Shown one piece after another: positions 48,001-51,000 of a stretch of 64,000 nt of DNA. Both the position numbers and the translations under genes were made by a program. The stretch spans positions 184,884,001 to 184,948,000 of the forward strand of contig NC_067401.1 of assembly GCF_016432865.1 (NCBI RefSeq). Direction: 5' to 3'. Position 1 is the stretch's first letter. Every line of letters starts with the position of its first letter. Below the pieces are notes generated by a model, which saw nothing but the letters and a program-made list of their open reading frames with translations, was not told the DNA's origin and made no database searches. This DNA is from Antechinus flavipes (lineage: Eukaryota).

Positions 48001-51000
48001 CCTCCTCCAAACTAAACAGAGATATCTTGGCTCAGCCCTGACCGCTAATCCTTTATAAAACCTTAACAATACTAATGATAATATTGATTTGAATTGCCAC
48101 CGCCAACCCTATTTAGACCTTAACTTCAATGATGTACCTTGAACCTCCGGGCTAGGAACTTGTTTTTCATTTCCAGGAAGTTTCCCTTGTTGGCCTCAGT
48201 TTTAAATGGCTCATTAATGATGGCAAACTGGGCATCATTTTGGATGTCCTGCCACCGAGCATAGCCATGGCTACCAGTAGAAGGAAAAGAAGGTTTTCTG
48301 TCAAGGAACCCAATAAGGATAGCCTGTGGAACAATAGCTCTTCCTCTGTAATCCCTGTCGCTCTGTTCAGCCTCTCCCAGGAGGCAAGAGCATTCTTTTC
48401 TGCAATTGGCCCCATAGAATATGAGCCCCCTTTTCCCTGTGATATGAGAACTTTCTTCATTATAGTCCCCTTTCTCTACAGCTTTTCTCCCTGATATGTG
48501 ATTTTTTTTTCTCATGTAATGAAGGATACAGGACAATCCCAGCCAGCAACCAGTAGTCATGCCTCCGGTGCCAGATCTCATTGAGTTTACCAGAGGAGAT
48601 AGCTGCCCGTTCCTCATTCTGCCATAGTGTATGAAGCTCTGGAAAGGGAGGGTGGCAGGAGGAACAGAGAAGGAAGCATCAGGCACCTGTAGTGATCACC
48701 TTACCATACTTCAGTAGCCCTTTGTTTTCCCCTACTTCCTAACCCTCGGAAATGGGAAAGATCAGTGATGGAATTACAGGATGAGTTAGGGTAATCAATC
48801 AATAAGCATTTATTAAATGCCTACTATATTATAGGCACTGTGCTAGGTGTTGGAAATACAAAGACTAAAGTGAAATCGATTCTATCCTCAAGGAACTTAT
48901 ATTCTATCAGGGAAAATAACTTGTATACATGTAAGTACATACCAAGTAAAATACAAGGCAATTTTGGTAAAGAGGCACGGGGAAACATTGGAAAAGATCT
49001 CATATAGGAAATGGCATTTAAATTAAACTTTTAAGGAAGCTAATGATTTGAAAAAATAAGGAAAGAATGCATTGCAGGCATGGGGAACAAGCAGATTCTA
49101 CAAAAACATGGATAAGACAAGTTCAGAGAGAGGCTTGTTGGAGTTGATACAAAGTAAACTTTCTAAAAATCAGAGATGTCAGAAAGTGAACTACCTCCTC
49201 ACCCCCCACCACCATTCCCATACAAACATATAAAACAATAGTGTCCACTTATAACTTTATGTAGTTCTGAAGCTGGAATGAAAGCTGAATGATAAAATTA
49301 GAATTAAGGATAATGATTAGGTTAGTGTTTGTTTAGAATTAAGGGTTAATGTAAGAAATAAAATATAATTTAGAAAAAGTTTGAGATAAAAGTAGGCTTA
49401 GTGTGGGATCAAATTAAGAGTAGGTCATTAATTGTAGTAGAATTATTTAGGACTTTACAGCTTAGAGGAAGGAGTGGATGCAGCATATATAGTCTAAGGT
49501 GGAATATCCTAGGAGATCCCCTGAAGACAAGAGTTCCCCATGGGAGTTCTAGACAAAAGAGATAATCTATATCAAAATTTTTGTTGACAGTGAGGATATT
49601 CCATACCTGTAAAGCCACCATCTGCAATATTAAACATGAACCGTGGTTTCTCTGTTTTCTCTTCTCGACGTCCACTGGATCGGGGCTCATCTCGGGATGG
49701 TCCTAATCGTTGTTCCCTCTCTCCCTTATTCTCTTCTGTAAGGAGAAGGGGCTAGGAGAACTCTGATTTTTTTCAAGCCAGAGAATAATCCTTCAATAAT
49801 CCAAGGACTATTTTCTATACTCCTTGCTCAAACAACATCCCCAAGAAGTAGACAACAACATTCCTAAGAACTGGCACCCCAGCCATCACCAACCCCATTA
49901 GTCTCATTGCTGTTTCCCTCATAGACTCAAGCAACCAGTCCTTCACCCATTACCTTTCTTGCCAAAATCCCCTATCTACCCTCTGGCCTCTCCCCATGTT
50001 CCTGTCCATCCAACAAATTCTCCTCCCCCCTTTCTTTTGGTGGTGTCTCTCTAGCTATGAGGAAGAAAAAATATTACACTGGCCTTCTGACCTAAGGAGG
50101 AAAACCCAGGAGTCTATTTCTAGTCAGTACTTCAAATGCCAACATCTACCGGGTTTCTCCTTGTCTCCTCGAGTTCCTGGTTCAGTTTCTAACTCTCCAG
50201 GGACTCCAGACTCCTCATCCCCTAGAATTATCCTCCTTGGTTCTCCTGGTGAAAGGGCTGGGCTGGGGGCATCAGGCTGGAAAGGATATAGAAAGTTAAA
50301 AGATAACAGAAAGCTTAGGTAATTTGGCCTTTAAGCCTAATTTTTCTTTGTGGGATCCAAACACATACACACCTCTACCTCCATCTTTTCCCCTCCTTTC
50401 TTGTCTGGCTTTTCATCTGGGTTGTCAGCTTCATCCTTTTCAGGAGGTAGCCTTGTTTCATCTCCTTTCTCACTTGGGGTTGGAGTAGCTGTACAGGAAG
50501 GCAGGGACAGATAATTTCTCAGACTGCCATTGAACTTCTGTGCCTCTCTATTTAGCTAACACTCTAAGTTTCTGTCTCAACTCTCCTACACAATTTCCTC
50601 CCACTTCAACTTCCAAAAATTAAATTGTATTGTTTGATTACCAGGTTTGGATGTGCAGGGACTATTGGCTGCAGAAACCTCAGGGGTGGTAGGAGATGTC
50701 TTGGTAGGGGATGATGCTCGGGATGAACGTTTAGAATCAGCACTAGGGTCAGGCATCAACTCTGGCATTGACCATCGCCCATTGATATGTTCAAACTCCT
50801 GCACCTAGGAAGCATAATAAAGGGGTGTGTGTGCGTGCGTGCGTGCGTTGTGTGCCTGTGTGTGTGCGTGTGTGTGTGTATTTCCATTTGGAATTGAGAT
50901 GAGAGGGTGTGGCTCCAGGTGCTTGGCCATTAGCCAGGTTCATCCCCCATATTCTCTCACCACCCCAGGTATGGAACTAAAGAACAAGAAACAAAAGAAG

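Follow-up and report, generated by a model that had tools for sequence, protein, structure and literature searches.

A frameshifted CHD3 cassette exon in dasyurid marsupials, the probable relic of a lost long isoform

The CHD3 form that contains exon 33 is the reference isoform in human genetics, and its numbering is used for the variants that cause Snijders Blok-Campeau syndrome. This isoform 1 (NM_001005273) has 2000 residues and 40 exons, and a shorter transcript is made without exon 33 (PMC12508100). In database searches, eutherian CHD3 proteins were found in forms with and without the 34-residue cassette, and sauropsid CHD3 models carry a stretch homologous to it. The isoforms CHD3.1 and CHD3.2 of the DNA-repair literature belong to the same gene and differ likewise in its C-terminal part, but the difference concerns a SUMO-interacting motif at the extreme C-terminus and not the cassette. 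Lineage-specific exon loss or inactivation is well known from other genes, for example from exon 3 of TNNI3 in shrews and moles (review PMC12992808).

The subject of the present analysis is a 101-nt block of the CHD3 gene in the dasyurid Antechinus flavipes. It resembles the eutherian exon 33 in its flanking exons, its 1-1 phase, its donor (GTAATGGGTG), a DNA identity of 78-79% and the colinearity of the encoded motifs (..LDGQEH..ERPEG..GD.GK.). In contrast to exon 33, it has 101 instead of 102 nt, stops in two frames and no trace in the spliced RNA contigs of a related species (library X15) or in the marsupial protein models that were read. As in the TNNI3 case, small lesions in one clade have inactivated an exon that is functional in the sister lineage, whereby skipping is frame-neutral and the gene stays functional; unlike in that case, the CHD3 exon had been optional in the sister lineage to begin with, and a phenotype is neither known nor suggested. 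With poison, or NMD-specific, exons (PMC2697156) the block shares a length that is not a multiple of three, a stop ahead of many junctions and intact splice sites, but it comes without observed inclusion (X15), conservation within the clade or evidence of regulation. A literature search found no paper on the dasyurid CHD3 exon and none on a function specific to the 34 residues.

The analyzed window is the whole stretch of 64,000 nucleotides of A. flavipes DNA (organism A below), in which CHD3 occupies the minus strand at 45-63 kb. Protein searches were seeded by the one exon that follows the cassette and then extended with database proteins; CHD3 fragments came up already with that exon. By tblastn against the window, residues 513-1990 of the Sarcophilus CHD3 model were covered in 24 exon pieces on the minus strand, with 1409 identities, compared with 1385 for Notamacropus, 1377 for Monodelphis, 1339 for camel and 1239 for turtle CHD3. 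The nearest CHD3 was accordingly that of Sarcophilus, ahead of wallaby, opossum, camel and turtle, and the locus appears to be dasyurid-like. The local exon map was built from translation and from the joints of RNA contigs. A CHD3 exon of 117 nt (50489-50373, minus strand) is followed by the constitutive exon 5' of the cassette (50276-50150, minus strand, 127 nt), which ends with ..AAACCCG in phase 1 and has the donor G|GTAGAT at 50149. The translation of the latter agrees with the Sarcophilus CHD3 model (P0317), and the X15 contigs contain both its canonical intron joint (50276/50373) and a skip joint to 49735. Then comes the block in question (50054-49954, minus strand, 101 nt, both splice sites present) and, behind it, the constitutive exon 3' of the cassette (49735-49607, minus strand, 129 nt, phase 1 to 1, acceptor ttacAG at 49737-49736), which is the partner in the skip junction.

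Several other features of the window were recorded alongside. SCARNA21 lies within a CHD3 intron (51473-51624, minus strand; Rfam RF00602) and scores 64.6 bits, which exceeds the gathering score. A second open frame runs across the final three CHD3 exons (46465-46211, 46025-45849 and 45149-45000, minus strand) and corresponds to the long alternative C-terminus of isoform X5 of wallaby CHD3 (P0352), so that marsupials may have conserved a C-terminal CHD3 isoform in an alternative frame. A stretch of 236 N (47512-47747) falls within the CHD3 exon beginning with LLEQALVIE. The constitutive acidic exon has a 6-nt in-frame indel at position 50403, the extra Asp-Lys being present in two related organisms (E and H, see below) and in the Tasmanian devil model and absent here. 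On the plus strand, a RING-finger reading frame (40829-41329) resembles the first exon of RNF227, the neighbor of CHD3 in human, and closes with ..PLPSN in front of a likely GT donor.

According to the original prediction, the homologue of the human cassette is 101 nt long here, both of its splice sites are intact, and it meets a TAG in the entry as well as in the exit frame. All of this was borne out, with every coordinate correct. The block at 50054-49954 has a 1-nt gap against two eutherian contigs with 102 nt; its acceptor AG (50056-50055) stands behind a pyrimidine tract, its donor GT is at 49953-49952 (AAG|GTAATG), and the donor with the first intron bases (GTAATGGGTG, 49943-49953, minus strand) is identical to both eutherian contigs. 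Entered from the upstream exon, the block encodes 26-27 residues up to a TAG at 49974-49972 (minus strand), the premature stop upon inclusion of the 101 nt. The exit frame, as set by the downstream exon, reads IGDFGKK and is closed on the 5' side by a TAG at 49978-49976 (minus strand). Instead of 102 nt that add 34 residues in an open frame, there are thus 101 nt with a TAG in both relevant frames. Two further claims were verified: skipping is frame-neutral (..AAA CCC G|AA GAG.., giving K P E E), and inclusion places the premature stop well before the last junction, the TAG at 49974-49972 being followed by at least seven further exons and junctions. The claim that no nearby acceptor rescues the frame stood in that no usable acceptor was found, but it overlooked an internal donor at 49979-49978, to which we return below. 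A single frame-keeping acceptor avoids the exit-frame stop; it would give an 18-nt exon starting from 49971 behind a purine-rich stretch and was rejected as implausible.

The block is the orthologue of the eutherian 102-nt CHD3 cassette, i.e., of human exon 33: flanking exons and phase agree, and the DNA can be aligned, splice sites included. The comparison was made with two eutherian short-read contigs (L001 and L002), judged to be non-human by their encoded protein sequence, in which the exon, bounded by AG and GT, measures exactly 102 nt and the first ten intron bases are as in the window. Over the exon, the window is 78-79% identical to these contigs, and the alignment has one 1-nt gap, which falls in a five-G run; the corresponding value is 69-70% in the constitutive exons on either side and about 45% (essentially unalignable) in most of the downstream intron. 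The two frame pieces of the block are colinear with eutherian and sauropsid CHD3 proteins, the break falling at one residue. From the flanking exons, the alignment to the eutherian 102 nt and the sauropsid stretch it follows that the therian ancestor had this exon as coding sequence and that the block is its true orthologue. The lesion itself (49978-49982, minus strand) consists, in the DNA alignment to L001 and L002, of the loss of one G from the ancestral five-G run together with a change of the adjacent G to T, whereby the eutherian GGAGGGGGAAACA corresponds to AGA-GGGTAGATA in the window. In both eutherian contigs, a long open frame in another register (L001 309-725, L002 1501-2421) starts from within the cassette (MDRSTGRG../MARSTGRG..) and runs through the short intron to the next exon; it is an artefact of intron-less gene calling on eukaryotic DNA.

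The lesion is shared by two further organisms, E (DNA) and H (an RNA library), in both of which the same single base is missing, the T at 49978 is present and the entry frame stops at the TAG of 49974-49972. With the extra Asp-Lys and a Leu-to-Ile change, both agree with the protein model of the Tasmanian devil and are most likely devil-like dasyurids. The disabling lesion is therefore fixed and common to A, E and H. At the lesion site, E and H have an A at 49976, which makes the exit-frame stop a TAA, the ancestral state by the eutherian outgroup. Moreover, their block has suffered additional damage, namely a 3-nt deletion in the exon and a 2-nt insertion behind 49949 in the donor region (GTAAAATGGG), the latter breaking a region otherwise invariant between marsupial and eutherians. 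The original prediction had proposed to check the exon length in other marsupials; it is 98 nt in E and H, likewise not a multiple of three. When polarized by the eutherian contigs, the changes in the block have accrued on both dasyurid branches. Three reading frames of the window close to the exon were also looked up exactly, in order to reach short-read contigs of relatives, and gave no match.

RNA evidence came from one library of a related species (X15, tissue unstated), in the form of assembled contigs, which drop rare forms. A contig with a depth of 179 joins 50150 directly to 49735, and another with a depth of 171 spans the canonical upstream intron. The skip joint was printed two bases off as a result of a synonymous difference at 50151, and the zero depth of X15 over 49628-49695 is a filter effect of no evidential value. 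The cassette was covered solely by a contig with a depth of 3.7, which represents unspliced intron, block and intron, and neither of the two inclusion junctions was found among the X15 contigs. As inclusion at the eutherian level would leave an assembled remnant even after decay, we infer that the splicing machinery mostly skips the exon.

The protein models point in the same direction. All ten named marsupial CHD3 models that were read (Monodelphis X1-X6 and one Ensembl-derived UniRef entry of Monodelphis, Gracilinanus, Sarcophilus and Notamacropus X5) lack the cassette and pass straight from ..KEKP to EE.K.., the sample being biased in that cassette-bearing models are likelier to sit in a eutherian-led cluster of 2345 members. 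At an identity of about 91% between marsupial and eutherian CHD3, the other marsupial models are probably within that cluster; none was found in ten smaller clusters or in a 40-member sample of the large one. Within the bounds of one library and a biased model sample, the skip joint at a depth of 179 and the ten models agree on the absence of the cassette from mature mRNA. In one Monodelphis model (P0351, UniRef A0A5F8G391), the donor of the upstream exon is read through into the intron (..KEKPGRCW..), with re-entry just 5' of the downstream exon; this looks like an annotation artefact.

The divergence between organisms A and E was compared among the cassette, its neighboring exons and the introns. 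The cassette had 5 differences in 101 positions plus the 3-nt deletion; the counts were 4 in 373 for the three constitutive exons and 18 in 527 for the introns, with Fisher p values relative to the cassette of 0.024 and 0.40, respectively. All five cassette changes were non-synonymous in the entry frame, compared with one out of four in the constitutive exons, where the other three were synonymous. Divergence of the cassette between the dasyurid lineages is thus intron-like and unlike that of the adjacent exons, and, with small numbers, points to neutral drift under a constraint relaxed after the lesion. An attempt to date the lesion from this divergence was abandoned, the counts being too small to tell about 25 from about 80 million years.

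The reading that we favor, with a probability of roughly 0.7, is that dasyurids have lost the long isoform and that the block is a decaying pseudo-exon, i.e., the lineage-specific death of an exon which was already optional. This accords with one of the options of the original prediction, that the lineage makes the short isoform only, which is supported by the skip contig of the relative, the ten cassette-less models and the intron-like divergence. One G would have been lost and a T gained in an ancestor shared by at least three dasyurid species, so that inclusion would read into a stop. The frameshift would then have been fixed before the antechinus-like and devil-like lineages split, and the block would have been drifting as non-coding DNA since. 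In the CHD3 mRNA of this clade, the flanking exons would be joined with the frame kept, giving the short protein isoform alone. With both splice sites still in place in this genome, the exon might occasionally be included; the resulting transcript would run into the premature stop and be removed by nonsense-mediated decay, as splicing noise rather than a regulatory device. This corresponds to the "noisy splicing" situation treated in PMC2697156. Presumably no tissue includes the exon, and the loss would have occurred without a compensating function. Against a loss speak the splice sites, both intact here, and the conservation of the exon, which is better than that of its neighbors in the comparison with eutherians. 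Given these intact sites and the high eutherian identity, constraint was either lost fairly recently or persists below what such small numbers can detect.

The competing view is that the exon has been re-tooled in marsupials, either as a 25-residue in-frame cassette using a new donor or as a decay-coupled, tissue-specific limiter of CHD3 output; taken as a whole, it is unlikely. In its first version, itself distinctly unlikely, the G-to-T change of the lesion would have created the GT at 49979-49978, and the exon would live on in a shortened form. The hypothetical exon (49980-50054, minus strand) has 75 nt, a multiple of three, with the internal donor AGG|GTAGAT, and its stop-free entry frame would add 25 residues; the intron side GTAGAT is the same as in the constitutive donor at 50149. 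In E and H, the corresponding exon would have 72 nt with the donor AGG|GTAAAT, in which the GT is kept and is nearer to consensus, and the sole indel that they have within this part is a frame-keeping loss of 3 nt. However, the joint 49980|49735 was found in none of the X15 RNA contigs, and an insert of 24-25 residues in none of the marsupial protein models read. Furthermore, each of the four substitutions within the 75 nt is non-synonymous, and, as read from the sequence, U1 would pair better with the original downstream donor (six contiguous consensus positions against four).

The second version, a regulated poison exon, had also been put forward in the original prediction. Conditional inclusion would expose the transcript to the stop and to nonsense-mediated decay and in this way set CHD3 dosage. 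The intact acceptor and donor fit such a device, as do the position of the stop 5' of at least seven later exon junctions and the age and good conservation of the exon relative to eutherians; ancient NMD-specific exons do tend toward purifying selection (PMC2697156). Strong conservation of exon and flanks within the lineage is what the dasyurids lack: divergence is intron-like, the changes are all non-synonymous, and indels have entered both the exon and the donor region. In addition, X15 has the skip form at a depth of 179 and no inclusion junction among contigs that may miss rare forms, and the literature search found no paper linking CHD3 to a poison exon. Dosage tuning by an exon for which no inclusion junction was found and which is not conserved between the dasyurid lineages is therefore very improbable.

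Finally, the explanation by a one-base assembly or sequencing error hiding a true, intact exon of 102 nt has practically no chance of being right: the missing base does adjoin a run of G, where indel errors typically arise, but a same-species short-read contig (X1, depth 31) has zero differences over 49560-50560 and, at the suggested checkpoint of 49972-49980, agrees with the window and not with 102 nt, a second sample contains all sampled words of the stretch, two other species have the same one-base shortage, T and stop, and even with the missing base put back before the T a TAG is still read in frame. As X1 may derive from the source animal, the defect common to E and H is the stronger of these arguments.

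If the block is indeed the decaying relic of a lost isoform, it adds one documented death of an alternative exon in one lineage. It is also a warning to annotators that a conserved block with intact splice sites need not be a live exon. A mammalian clade that has done without the 34 residues for millions of years would constitute a natural experiment, and the loss of the cassette suggests that this segment is dispensable for the core function of CHD3 and NuRD. Such dispensability would bear on the interpretation of variants within exon 33.
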